Source: Podarcis muralis (taxonomy: Eukaryota). Taken from it: 64,000 bases of DNA. The stretch covers positions 107,322,001-107,386,000 of the forward strand of contig NC_135656.1 of assembly GCF_964188315.1 (NCBI RefSeq), given 5' to 3'. The notes below the pieces were generated by a model. The model ran no database searches, had not been told where the DNA came from, and was given only the letters and a program-made list of their open reading frames with translations. Position numbers and translations under genes: made by a program. Shown here piece by piece: positions 1 through 20,030 of the stretch. Each line of letters begins with the position of its first letter. The stretch's first letter is position 1.

Positions 1-47
1 GTCTCCATCCTGCCTCCCACACAGCTGCTGGCTTCTAGAATTGTCAC
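1..47 (-). CDS. L-amino-acid oxidase (IL4I1/LAO family), internal coding exon, truncated by the window edge
   Basis: Acceptor cccacccccccag|GTG at 47. Reads VTILEASSCVGGRMET, the flavin amine oxidase segment that follows GxGxxG...AGHK. Phase 0 matches the donor at 5708. Confidence 0.9.
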   Translation of the reverse strand, partial: MTILEASSCVGGRME

Positions 48-163
48 CTGGGGGGTGGGCAAAAGAAGAACTATAATTGCAGCGGTTGCAAAATGGCCTC
101 CACCGAACAAGGTTGAAGAAGGTGCCAATGGGAAAGGGCCAAAGTGTTTGTTTTATGAGAATA

Positions 164-401
164 GAAGAAGAAGAAGAGTTTGGATTTGATATCCCGCCTT
201 TCACTCCCTTTAAGGAGTCTCAAAGCGGCTAACATTCTTCTTTCCCTTCCTCCCCCACAACAAACACTCTGTGGAGTGGGGCTGAGAGACTTCAGAGAAG
301 TGTGACTGGCCCAAGGTCACCCAGCAGCTGCATGTGGAGGAGCAGGGAATCAAACCCGGTTCACCAGATTACGAGTCTATCGCTCTTAACCACTACACCA
401 C
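164..401 (-). mobile_element. Squam3-type (Ther1/MIR-derived) tRNA-headed SINE
   Basis: Reverse complement of the element at 56851 and 58384 (GTGGTGTAGTGGTTAAGAGCG...GATATCAAATCCAAACTCTTCTT); (TTC)n tail. Confidence 0.85.
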
Positions 402-1143
402 CAGTCCAATATTTATAGTCCTGATTATAGCAGCTTTCCTCAGCCTCCAGATGTTGGACTGCAACTTTCATCAGCCCCTGCCAGCATGGCAAATGGTCAG
501 GGATGATGGGAGCTGTAGTCCCTGGAGAGCCAAAAGCTGAACGATCTGTCACTGGTACCTTATTCTAGGCAGGTTAAGCAAATTATATCATTCAGGTGTC
601 AGAGATGTCTGGTGACTCATGCTGATTTCATTCATTCATCTCCGGTGAGTTTGTAATTAAGACTTACAAGCCTTGGATATTTTCTGTTACCTTTCAGAAG
701 TTGCTGCCACATTGGATCTGCTGGTGTTATTCTTATTCAAGGGCAATTATCAACTTGCTGTCAGATTACTTAGCCTGAATGTTCAGCCTGCTAAGTTTGC
801 CTGGAAGTTACACTGTTGAGGAATGCTCGATGCCAGTACTGGGGACTGGCAAAATGGACAAGCTCAGGCGTAAAGTCTGCTCTCAGAATGGACTTAGGCT
901 GGTGGGACTGAGGGCAGCAGAAATGGACCCTGTTGATACCTTATTGAAACACAAACTGCAAGAAGCATCTTTCTGTAGAAGATGCTACTAGAGAGTGGGG
1001 ACTGTGCAGATTCAAAATGGCCAAGTTTGCAGGAACATCAGCTTTGAGTTCATTGAGTCGGAAGGACTGGGCAGTGTGCTTCGGGCATGCAAGCTCTGAC
1101 TCGCATTCAGCTGCTGCTGAAGTTTGGGTTGTATTGTGTAGGC

Positions 1144-1382
1144 TAGGGGTCAGCAAACTTTTTCAGCAGGGGGCCGGGCCACTGTCCCTCAGACCTTGTG
1201 AGGGGCCGGAAAAAAAATATGAATGAATTCCTGTGCCCCACAAATAACCCAGAGATGCATTTTAAATAAAAGGACACATTCTACTCATGTAAAAACACAC
1301 TGATTCCCAGACCGTCCGTGGGCCAGATTGAGAAGGCGATTGGGCCGGATCCGGCCCCCGGGACTTAGTTTGCGTACCCATG
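1144..1382 (+). mobile_element. hAT-type MITE (CAGGGGTCAGCAAAC...GTTTGCCTACCCATG family)
   Basis: Imperfect TIRs; same body as the copies at 8955, 28700, 29584 and 37079. hAT assignment rests on the 8-bp TSD-like flanks of the 37079 copy. Confidence 0.75.
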
Positions 1383-1920
1383 GAGTAAACCCACACAAAT
1401 CTTCGGTGGTTGGGGCAGACTCCCCTTGGGAGGCACAGAACAGCTGGAAGGGTGCAGATGCCAGCAGTGTTGGCTCTTGATTTTGGAGGGCTCGTGGGCA
1501 AGACTCCTTTCCCTCCAAGAGTCTAGCTCCTCTCGACTTTCACAGGCAGCTGATTCTCCTCATCACCACTGCTGCCATTGGCTTGCTTGCCAGGGAGAGA
1601 GCCAATCAGCAGGCAGTGGCAACTGCTGCTCTGCCACCACTTTTCCCTAAGGTGGAAAAGTGCAGCTGTGTGCAAGTCGAGTGGGGAGCAACCTGCAATT
1701 GCTGCTTTGTTTCAGTGGGGTTTCCCTGTACAACAGCAAGGTCAAGCTTCTTCACTTTATCTGGGGACGGGGCATGGCTCAGCAGCACTGCATCTCCCTT
1801 GCATGCAGAAGATCCCAGGTTCAATCCCTACCATCTCCGGGTACGGTTGGGAAAGACCCTCTGTCTGAAATATTGGAGAGCTGCTCAGCAAACAATCCTA
1901 AGCTAGGAGGACCATGGGTC

Positions 1921-2288
1921 TGTATTATGTACTGAGTTGAATAGGATCCAAAATGCAGCAGTCTGATTGGTCCTAGAACAATAGGATCCAAAATGCAGCA
2001 GTCTGATTGGTCCTAGAACAATAGGATTCAGAATGCAGAAGTCTGATTGGTCCTAGAACAATGCAGCAGTATGATTGGTCTGCAGGAGCCACCCAATCCA
2101 GCTCCAGATGGAAGTGAATCCACAACCTGATTGGCCTACAGGAGAATCCCGGAATTAGCCAATCACGTGCAGCCCATTGTGTAAATAATGTATATAAAGC
2201 AGATGCTTTGGGGGAACTTTCATTCCTCCTCACCACTATGAGCTGAATAAAGAGCATGAAATCCACTCTCAACTCTGAGTATATTTCA
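1921..2288 (+). mobile_element. Solo LTR-like element containing 40-bp CCAAT-box tandem repeats
   Basis: TG...CA ends; 3.5 copies of a 40-bp unit at 1941-2080 carrying ATTGG; TATATAAA 2191-2198; AATAAA 2246-2251; GTC(TG) repeated at both junctions. Confidence 0.6.
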
Positions 2289-2954
2289 GTCTGGTTTAGC
2301 AAAGGAGAGTTTCCTACGCTCCTATGTCTGCAACGTCAGAGATGTCTCTTCCTTTGCTCTCCTTTCTAATGTCAGTGCTGGATTAGGGCCCTGATCTACA
2401 GATCTTTTGCACACACCAGGATGCCCACAGACACCAGTGCGCAAGGATCTTTGCATGCTCTGCTGCGTTACAGATGTCTGGTCCTGGGACAGGAGGGCAG
2501 ACAGCAGAATAAATTTTGGTGGGGGGTCGGAGCTAGCTCCAAAACAAAATTGAGAAAAACAGGGCACAAGACAGGTAGGTGAATTCTGGTGCTTTCAATC
2601 AGCTAACATCTTGAAAACGTCACATTCTGGAGGAACTGTTTGTCAGAGATTACCCAAGATCCCTGAGGGAAAGGTCTGTTTTTCTGGTTATGATTACAGC
2701 TCTGCTTCAGAACAGATGCACCTGTATAAATAAAGCCACAAGATCTGACTCATTGGCAACGGCTCTGTTGGGAAACCAGACTGCTGTGCCTTGGTTAGCT
2801 CCTTGGCAAAGTGTCAACCGATTTGGGGTCAAAAATACATGGGTGATCCTGACAGATTCCGGATCCCCATTCCCATGCATGGCATAGGAAGCTGCCTTTA
2901 TACTGAACCGGATGCAATCAAGCCAAGCAAAACCACTTGTGCAATGCAGGGATG

Positions 2955-18273: not shown

Positions 18274-18786
18274 CATAGGAGCCAACTTCTAGGAGCCAAG
18301 GTCCCTTCCCCAAAAAAATATTTTTGGGGGGGCTGGGCCCACCAGAGTTAATGGGCATTGCCATTCAAATCGTGTACGTGCAGCATGTCATGTGATCGAT
18401 TATGTGGGGCAGGGCTTACCTGCCCCCCCATGCCGGATTTATGTATAAGCTAAACAAGCTATAGCTTAGGGGCCCCACACTCTTGGGGGCCCCAAAAAAA
18501 GTTAAAGGGGAAAAAATCTGGATGTACATTTCCAAAATATAAGATAAAAAACAAATAAAATAAAACCTTACATACAGCAACAGTGTCAAATGGCTTTAGA
18601 TACCTATTAGGTCCATAAATTACCATATAGCATATATTCAACACAAAAAAACAGCAACAATTTGTTGTTGACAAAAGACAGCTGGACATATAAAGGGCCC
18701 CATAACCTTCAGTAGCTTAGGGACTCATCAAACCTCAATCCGGCGCTGCCCCCACCCCCAATATTTTATTCGAGTTGGCATTACTG
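18274..18786. mobile_element. Nested MITEs: outer CATAGGAGCCAAC family, inner hAT CAGTGCCGGATTT family (18429-18748)
   Basis: Outer element matches 62845-63316; inner element matches 22112-22539 and 61639-61998. Confidence 0.7.
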
Positions 18787-18885
18787 CCACTGCTTCTCAG
18801 CCTAGCCTACCTCACAGGTTCTAGAGTCAGGCAGGTAGCCATGTTGGTCAGACGCAGTCTAAATATATAAAAAAATAAACAATAA

Positions 18886-19245
18886 AAAAAATGTCCAGTA
18901 GCACCTTAGAGACCAACTAAGTTTGTTCTTGGTATAAGGTTTCATGTGCATAGGTATCTGAAGAAGTGTGCATGCACACAAAAGCTTATACAGTGGTACC
19001 TCGGGTTAAGTACTTAATTTGTTCCAGAGGTCTGTACTTAACCTGAAACTGTTCTTAACCTGAAGCACCACTTTAGCTAATGGGGCCTCCTGCTGCCACC
19101 AGAACACAATTTCTGTTCTCATCCTGAAGCAAAGTTCTTAACCTGAAGCACTATTTCTGGGTACATACCTGAAGCGTATGTAACCCGAGGTACCACTGTA
19201 CCAAGAACAAACTTAGTTGGTTTCTAAGGTGCTACTGGACATTTT
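18886..19245. mobile_element. Inverted pair of Penelope-like termini with a family-A MITE (18991-19198) inserted
   Basis: Arms GTCCAGTAGCACCTTAGAGACCAACTAAGTTTGTTCTTGGTATAAG and its near-perfect reverse complement; MITE sits at a TA. Confidence 0.75.
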
Positions 19246-19563
19246 GTATTTTTATTTTATCTATTCCTACCCCACAGGCTTGTTGTAAGGATCAGAGGAG
19301 GAGAGGAGGAAAGGAGGAACTATGTGCGCAGCCTTGAGCTCCCTGCAGGAAAGCTGGGACAGAAATATGAGAAATTAAATGAATAAACGTATGACTATGC
19401 AGGCATGGGATAGCAGAGGGGTGGGAGCACCTTAAGAGGCTGGGGTGAGTCAGGAGGAAGTTTACAAGCCCAGAGCTGGTTCTGGCTGCTGCAGTGAGAG
19501 GCTGGAGGGGCCGCGGATGCCAAACTTTCCCTACTTTCCCTTCTTCTCCCGCCCCACCCACAG

Positions 19564-19691
19564 ACGGAAAGGAGAAATTCAGGATTCTGGGCTGCACCAG
19601 ACAGAAGAAAAAAGGCTGCGGCGTAAACAAGGAGTCGCACGGCCACCAGGTCAGCATCCGATGCTGCTCTTCGGATTACTGCAACGTCTAG
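19564..19691 (+). CDS. Three-finger protein, exon 3 (ends CCSSDYCNV-stop, no GPI signal)
   Basis: Pyrimidine tract then cacag|AC, phase 1; DGKEKFRILGCTRQKKKGCGVNKESHGHQVSIRCCSSDYCNV*; the CCxxDxCN Ly6 signature. Confidence 0.92.
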
Positions 19692-20024
19692 CAAGGAGCT
19701 GGGAATCCAGCCCCGTCTCCATAATTCTTCCTCCTCTTCCCGCATCTGCGCTCCGTTTTGTCTCCCCTCCTCGGGAGCCAAGCCAAGATGTGAGAAAAGA
19801 GCGGGGAATGGAAACTTACAGATCTTTGCAAAACTCCCCTGGCTTCTCTGAGATTTCCCTCATATTCCGGAAGAAGAATGGCTTCTCTTCCTCATCTCCA
19901 CCCACAACCCACGTTTGCTTGCCTTCCCCCCCTCTCCTCTCTGGGGGGCGTTTCTCACCCCTCGTCTTCCAGAATATTTCTGGGGTTGAGCAACAGATTA
20001 TATTGAGGAAACGTAAATGACAGA

Positions 20025-20030
20025 AATAAA
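20025..20030 (+). terminator. Candidate poly(A) signal of the three-finger gene
   Basis: First AATAAA after the stop, about 335 nt downstream. Confidence 0.5.

Follow-up and report, generated by a model that had tools for sequence, protein, structure and literature searches.

In a 64-kb window of the genome of the lizard Podarcis muralis (contig NC_135656.1 of assembly GCF_964188315.1, forward-strand positions 107,322,001 to 107,386,000; the window is this whole stretch of 64,000 nucleotides, and all positions below are counted from its first letter), an L-amino-acid oxidase (LAAO) family gene on the minus strand and a gene for a small three-finger protein of the Ly6/uPAR family on the plus strand lie head-to-head. 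They are two separate genes for predicted secreted proteins and form an ordinary divergent pair, with 3,459 bp between the outermost placed LAAO exon border (12932) and the start codon of the three-finger gene (16392), or 3,361 bp if the 5' end mapped for the three-finger transcript is taken instead. An earlier note, made from the letters of this stretch, had described such an arrangement with at most 3.5 kb between the two genes, and both the open reading frames and RNA contigs confirmed it.

The pair is probably a remnant of an old gene group linked to the major histocompatibility complex (MHC). As an overall explanation, we consider it moderately probable that the window holds a divergent pair in a lizard-type layout, left over from such a group. 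The primary transcript of the LAAO gene would then start near the start of the three-finger gene, at ~16.2-16.4 kb, and both genes would share a tissue-restricted promoter region of the non-CpG kind. Furthermore, the pair and the nearby zinc-finger and tRNA genes would go back to an old MHC-linked group that was rearranged in the MHC-B TRIM/BG subregion of birds, and the head-to-head layout would be an arrangement of lizards (at least of Podarcis) instead of a conserved sauropsid one.

Family and 5' exons of the LAAO gene

Enzymes of the LAAO family oxidize L-amino acids in a reaction that depends on flavin adenine dinucleotide (FAD), giving hydrogen peroxide, ammonia, and a keto acid. The coding exon by which the gene was recognized lies in an open reading frame at 5654-5935 of the minus strand and holds the FAD-binding beta-alpha-beta element, with its GxGxxG motif and the acidic residue that closes strand 2. 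In a phmmer search of 1.8 billion representative proteins, this exon obtained 176 matches, of which the named ones are L-amino-acid oxidases or IL4I1. The top match is a 523-aa amine oxidase of Varanus komodoensis, with an identity of 74% in phmmer and of 75-79% in tblastn alignments. The Varanus relative (P0001) scored 211 bits against PF01593, and the exon itself (5708-5916) gave weak Pfam matches of the Rossmann type.

In a tree of 43 LAAO-family proteins, the exon paired with the Varanus protein with a support of 96 in the Shimodaira-Hasegawa-like approximate likelihood ratio test (SH-aLRT). Both belong to a sauropsid LAAO clade (support 91) that also includes three bird LAAOs together with a tortoise protein, a Thamnophis-Gekko pair, turtles, and an agamid protein, and that is distinct from the mammalian IL4I1 and LAO1-like clades. 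The gene is thus a member of the vertebrate LAAO/IL4I1 family by its nearest relatives as well as by its position in the tree. Since it leaves the window at the left edge, these results refer to the first ~90 residues of the oxidase.

The exon with the FAD motif has no in-frame ATG and is preceded by an acceptor (tgtcttcttAG, at 5917/5918); the exon therefore spans 5916-5708 and requires one base from an upstream exon. RNA from four runs (X1 and X9 as contigs, X23 and X24 as raw reads) was mapped to positions 12300-18200 (5,901 letters), a stretch that does not include the exon at 5916. Contigs of 750 nt from X1 and of 227 nt from X9, which come from two studies, match 12765-12932 exactly, and the flanks of this segment on the minus strand are a cccAG acceptor and a GTAAGC donor. 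Position 12932 is a true exon border, since the matches of both contigs stop exactly there and the splice sites are canonical. The earlier note was therefore right to end a LAAO exon at 12932, but the gene extends further in the 5' direction: both contigs bear 29-30 further 5' letters beyond 12932 that have no match in the adjacent DNA, and at least one more non-coding LAAO exon must thus lie upstream, which brings the true gap between the two genes below 3.36 kb. At its other end, the X1 contig runs 553 nt downstream past the donor.

The likely start codon of the LAAO gene, at 12775-12777, stands in a strong context (gaccATGg) and opens a frame that reads MGRL plus one base (phase 1) and joins the acceptor at 5916 in frame. 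Provided that the two exons are spliced in this way, the predicted N-terminus has a hydrophobic core and resembles a signal peptide with an ambiguous cleavage site. An ATG further upstream in the same exon (12849-12851, minus strand; ATGAAAGTG) was rejected as the LAAO start because it is not in frame and its context is weak. It opens an upstream open reading frame that overlaps the strong-context start, and this may damp the translation of the oxidase.

Two candidates next to the FAD-motif exon were rejected as well, namely an acceptor at 5944/5943, which creates a stop codon, and an ATG at 5934-5936, which is not in the oxidase frame and meets a stop after 29 codons. It is worth noting that the latter ATG sits where many vertebrate LAAOs begin and that the short frame it opens is similar to the N-terminal sequence of the Varanus model (..LCLSSASGP..). 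The start of the Podarcis LAAO seems to have shifted to the upstream exon (MGRL), with the same DNA being read in another frame as a signal peptide. This could represent either a relocation of the start codon or an artefact of the Varanus model.

A secreted Ly6/uPAR protein encoded on the plus strand

The frames of the three exons of the three-finger gene (Table 1) were read from the sequence, and RNA contigs support exons 1 and 2. An X9 contig (435 nt) joins 16294-16445 to 17117-17231 and continues for 168 nt, and an X1 contig covers 16343-16446, up to the donor of exon 1. The encoded protein has 98 aa with 10 cysteines, and its domain opens with IKCNTC and closes with CCSSDYCNV, in agreement with the hallmarks of the LU domain (8-10 cysteines, an N-terminal CxxC, and a C-terminal CCxxxxCN). 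The gene also has the three-exon layout of the Ly6 family, exon 1 coding for the signal peptide and exons 2 and 3 for the LU domain, and both introns are of phase 1. Because the stop codon comes one residue past the CN motif (CNV), the protein lacks a tail for a glycosylphosphatidylinositol (GPI) anchor and belongs to the secreted subclass of Ly6 proteins, which have no C-terminal GPI signal.

The translations of all three exons are 100% identical to P. muralis XP_028569578.1, and the same gene is found in P. raffonei and P. lilfordi with 3-4 differences. Exons were searched singly, with P0172 and P0192, both natural full-length proteins, standing in for joined models. The natural full-length three-finger protein scored 37.7 bits against PF00021 (UPAR_LY6; cut-off 24.8 bits) and 25.5 bits against PF00087 (Toxin_TOLIP). 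The closest solved structures by sequence are PSCA (E=0.003) and SLURP-1 (E=0.015), both weak matches, and by language-model features the protein lies closest to clusters of PATE-type proteins, which are leads at the family level only.

RefSeq names the protein "LY6G5B-like". Human LY6G5B and LY6G5C are small Ly6/uPAR proteins without a GPI signal that are encoded in MHC class III, and the lizard protein is like them in size, in the missing GPI signal, and possibly in its linkage to the MHC. However, the RefSeq name is an automatic best-hit label.

Transcription of the interval between the two genes

With regard to the RNA runs, transcripts of the two genes were either present together (X1 and X9) or absent together (X23 and X24) in all four. 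The LAAO and three-finger depths were 45.6 and 7 in X1 and 4.9 and 6.8 in X9, and neither raw-read run had any depth on the unique exons of either gene.

The run with the highest LAAO level also contained RNA from the interval. In X1, a depth of 3-11 was found on the unique intergenic pieces 12978-13137, 14475-14973, 15362-15732, and 15847-16175, and intron 2 of the three-finger gene showed no coverage at 17422-17618 and 17816-18200. The same intergenic pieces had no coverage in X9, where the LAAO level is ten-fold lower. The simplest interpretation is that the intergenic depth in X1 is unspliced LAAO RNA that reaches to at least 16175, in which case LAAO transcription would begin no more than a few hundred bases away from that of the three-finger gene. 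The pattern further suggests that the unplaced first LAAO exon adjoins or overlaps the 5' end of the three-finger gene. The interval from 12933 to 16293 thus probably holds intron 1 of the LAAO gene and possibly its first exon.

Possible counterparts in the MHC-B region of birds

The earlier note had likened this neighborhood to the chicken MHC-B region, and its account of that region agrees with the literature. The chicken MHC-B TRIM subregion contains LAO, HEP21, Bzfp1-3, four tRNA genes (Lys, Lys, Val, and Leu), seven TRIM genes, and GNB2L1 (PMC4988538). Gene order and strand are available for the Mikado pheasant, which its authors compared gene by gene with chicken: Bzfp1 (minus), 44G24.1 (minus), IL4I1/LAO (42,730-46,759, plus), TRIM7.1 (51,325-62,131, minus), HEP21 (63,362-64,247, minus; 107 aa, 3 exons), and TRIM39.2 (minus) (PMC5941149). 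LAAO and Hep21 are also present in the BG region of an ibis (PMC4302302). LAAO, Ly6, and HEP21 go unmentioned in a paper on the Anolis MHC and in one on the crocodile MHC.

As in the MHC-B TRIM-BG regions of galliforms and the ibis, the lizard window combines, within 20 kb, a LAAO of the sauropsid clade with a small, secreted, three-exon Ly6/uPAR protein, and zinc-finger genes lie on the 5' side of the LAAO gene with tRNA genes close by. The tRNA genes and the KRAB-type zinc-finger gene listed in the earlier note were indeed recovered, the former as copies of tRNA-Tyr and the latter as an exon with 17-18 fingers and half a KRAB box. The set that characterizes the bird subregion (LAO, a HEP21-type Ly6 gene, zinc-finger genes, and tRNA genes) is therefore found together here, at the level of gene families. 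At this level, the two families are indeed linked near the MHC in birds as well as in the lizard, and this linkage is probably old. With respect to function, chicken IL4I1/LAO is induced by Salmonella in phagocytes, which supports a role in defence for the bird relative of the LAAO (PMC7222322).

The same two protein families are encountered at the LAAO and three-finger toxin loci of snake venoms. In vipers, the venom LAAO genes are reported to be two duplicate copies that lie on macrochromosome 2 between 'CKR1' and UQCRC1 (PMC12758475). A venom-type LAAO locus was rejected here, with the viper flanks absent from the window and an N-terminus that is unlike the venom-like form (..SPLEECFR..) of the agamid protein P0028. 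Venom three-finger toxins derive from another Ly6 cluster, and nothing here suggests a toxin role for the lizard pair.

Weighing the alternatives

A number of observations weigh against a pair with closely spaced starts that was retained from an old MHC-linked group. The tree gave no firm order of branches inside the sauropsid LAAO clade, and squamates have at least two LAAO lineages; the window gene may therefore be either the counterpart or a paralogue of the bird MHC-B LAO. For the three-finger protein, word-index searches with a piece of exon 3 and with the full natural protein (P0172) returned no relatives beyond Podarcis. TRIM, BTN, and MHC genes, which the earlier note had expected nearby, were not found within the 64 kb, nor were RACK1 (GNB2L1) or exons for RING, B-box, SPRY/B30.2, or Ig domains, in a partial scan that combined six-frame motifs, on which the coverage of short exons depended, with Pfam searches of 20 long open frames (at least 110 aa) and of selected pieces. 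Furthermore, LAO (plus) and HEP21 (minus) of the pheasant are convergent, 16.6 kb apart, and have TRIM7.1 between them (PMC5941149), and the head-to-head partner of pheasant LAO is 44G24.1, whereas in the lizard it is the Ly6 gene at less than 3.4 kb. For this reason, sauropsids as a whole do not have a common divergent promoter for the two genes. The sauropsid LAAO-Ly6 module put forward in the earlier note accordingly holds as a family-level linkage in birds and the lizard but not as a common layout.

Other points of this kind concern the lizard pair itself. The splice from 12765 to 5916 is predicted from frame and splice sites, and a check of donor-like sites in 16176-16350 revealed no convincing first LAAO exon. 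The spacing of the start sites is bracketed by intergenic RNA reaching 16175 and by a three-finger 5' end at or before 16294. Classical bidirectional gene pairs have start sites less than 1 kb apart in a CpG island. The lizard genes resemble vertebrate bidirectional pairs in their opposite orientation, short spacer, and overlapping expression, but they share no CpG island (none was found in the interval, and the observed/expected ratio of CpG is 0.08-0.5 across 12.8-17 kb), and ~40% of the spacer consists of transposon-derived or repeat DNA, as seen from a very high multi-copy read depth. The joint presence or absence of the transcripts in four runs of unidentified tissue is weak evidence, and the ratio of LAAO to three-finger depth shifts ~nine-fold between X1 and X9, so that the co-expression anticipated from the earlier note is observed as co-occurrence but not as a constant ratio. 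Finally, the intergenic depth in X1 could stem from carry-over of DNA, and coverage gaps in such read mapping, including those in the empty intron 2, prove nothing.

Many of these observations would be expected if the two genes were chance neighbors in lacertids. They would then have independent promoters, the three-finger gene would be a young, fast-evolving Ly6 copy unrelated to HEP21, and the resemblance to birds would merely reflect large and scattered families (Ly6, zinc-finger, and tRNA genes). The restriction of the three-finger protein to Podarcis in the searches, the different layout in birds, the spacer without a CpG island and with much transposon DNA, the shifting depth ratio, and the missing TRIM and BTN genes are all in line with this explanation, as are the tRNA types, which are Tyr in the lizard versus Lys, Val, and Leu in chicken. 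However, by a rough estimate from family sizes (not a computed probability), chance is unlikely to explain why a LAAO gene and a secreted three-exon Ly6 gene without a GPI signal lie no more than 20 kb apart in two galliforms, an ibis, and a lizard. The LAAO, moreover, groups with the bird genes in one sauropsid clade, and the co-occurrence of the transcripts in four of four runs argues in the same direction. We therefore regard chance neighborhood as somewhat unlikely, though deserving serious consideration.

A different explanation would make the pair a co-regulated bidirectional module conserved in reptiles, in which one short promoter serves both genes in the same secretory or immune cells and which birds broke by an inversion that brought in TRIM7.1. 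The intergenic transcription in X1, which extends to ~120 bp from the mapped 5' end of the three-finger gene and scales with the LAAO level, speaks for such a module together with the unplaced upstream exon in the LAAO contigs and the co-occurrence of both genes in the runs. Yet the transcript ratio is not constant and the arrangement is not seen in birds, and we consider this module quite improbable. The most far-reaching version joins these ideas to an extended-MHC linkage that predates the split of lizards and birds: squamates would have one shared bidirectional promoter and would co-secrete the oxidase and the three-finger protein as a pair in mucosal or egg defence, and bird HEP21 and LAO would be rearranged descendants of this pair. 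This version in its entirety appears quite improbable to us as well. The explanation that we favor, a divergent pair in a lizard-type layout left from an old MHC-linked group, takes over the linkage and leaves the layout to lizards.

Both genes are already part of public annotation, the three-finger gene in RefSeq, and the result is in this sense a note on annotation and synteny. If the linkage is old, the LAO and HEP21 content of the MHC-B TRIM/BG region, which looks specific to birds, would date to the common ancestor of lizards and birds, and the pair could serve comparative immunogenetics as a marker for tracing the extended MHC through assemblies of reptile genomes. The pair would then also be a simple natural case for studying the co-regulation of two secreted defence proteins from a divergent promoter without CpG island.

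Table 1. Positions of the LAAO gene, the three-finger gene, and other features in the 64-kb window of P. muralis (UTR, untranslated region; LINE, long interspersed nuclear element).
Feature	Position	Strand	Basis or remark
LAAO exon following the FAD-motif exon, start VTILEASSCVGGRME	1..47	-	gene extends past left window edge
LAAO coding exon: rest of signal peptide, CFEDPEY motif, FAD-binding GAGVAG	5708..5916	-	phmmer, tblastn
tRNA-Tyr(GTA) with intron, inside LAAO intron	8025..8113	-	ARAGORN; Rfam RF00005, 58 bits
tRNA-Tyr(GTA) with intron, inside LAAO intron	9332..9420	+	ARAGORN, Rfam
LAAO exon: most of 5' UTR and likely start codon	12765..12932	-	RNA contigs, AG acceptor, GTAAGC donor
Interval between mapped 5' exons	12933..16293		Bov-B-type LINE fragment at ~13217-13730, several short repeats
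Three-finger exon 1: 98 nt or more of 5' UTR, start codon at 16392, signal peptide MVGALLFAVCSLALLESG, donor of phase 1	16294 (or earlier)..16446	+	RNA contigs; 100% identity to P0192
Three-finger exon 2, ESIKCNTCLMKSPDAECMTGVEGCMSQGEKCMTIRISQ	17118..17231	+	RNA contig; Pfam UPAR_LY6 E=2e-4, exon alone
Three-finger exon 3: coding end ...CCSSDYCNV, stop 19689-19691, 3' UTR to AATAAA at 20025-20030	19564..20030	+	
Single-exon gene, 322-aa type II membrane protein, family unassigned	24892..25857	-	downstream of three-finger gene
tRNA-Tyr(GTA) with intron, third copy	28466..28554	-	
Zinc-finger exon of KRAB-type ZNF gene, 17-18 C2H2 fingers	49514..51832	-	
tRNA-Lys(CUU)-like	52993..53065	+	Rfam 51 bits; acceptor-stem mismatches; missed by ARAGORN
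KRAB-B-like stretch KPDLLSWMDRGEDPW	within open reading frame 53122-53595		
KRAB A box, second half, LCWNIMQENYETLISLG	56482..56571	-	23.1 bits

Other features of the window

Among the three tRNA-Tyr genes, the copies at 28466-28554 and 9332-9420 match near-perfectly, including ~50 bp of flank on each side (28416-28604 and 9282-9470), and the copy at 8025-8113 differs from the others in its flanks and intron. The tRNA-Lys(CUU)-like sequence sits between the KRAB-like and the zinc-finger exons of the ZNF gene and is probably a pseudogene or the head of a short interspersed nuclear element. Apart from zinc fingers and half a KRAB box, the Pfam searches of the 20 long open frames gave no match elsewhere in the window. 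No frame immediately upstream of the second half of the KRAB A box (56482-56688 region, minus strand) contained the expected first half, and the KRAB domain of this gene may be truncated, frameshifted, or split.

The 322-aa protein encoded downstream of the three-finger gene has a transmembrane helix at residues 73-98 and an internal duplication of a ~56-aa module that contains cysteines (blastp of the halves, E=3e-12). Relatives with 37-76% identity were found in lizards, geckos, an amphisbaenian, and snakes, the closer lacertid proteins being part of its own 90%-identity cluster. No Pfam domain was assigned, every copy is annotated as 'uncharacterized', and no match outside squamates appeared in these searches, which makes the gene a candidate for a squamate-specific family.

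In P. lilfordi, the three-finger gene and the 322-aa gene have consecutive accession numbers, an indirect hint that they are adjacent there as well. In Phrynocephalus forsythii, the LAAO P0028 (JRQ81_003366) and a relative of the 322-aa protein (P0180, JRQ81_003400) are encoded on one 184-Mb sequence, 34 locus tags apart, a hint that this part of the chromosome harbors several LAAO paralogues in lizards.

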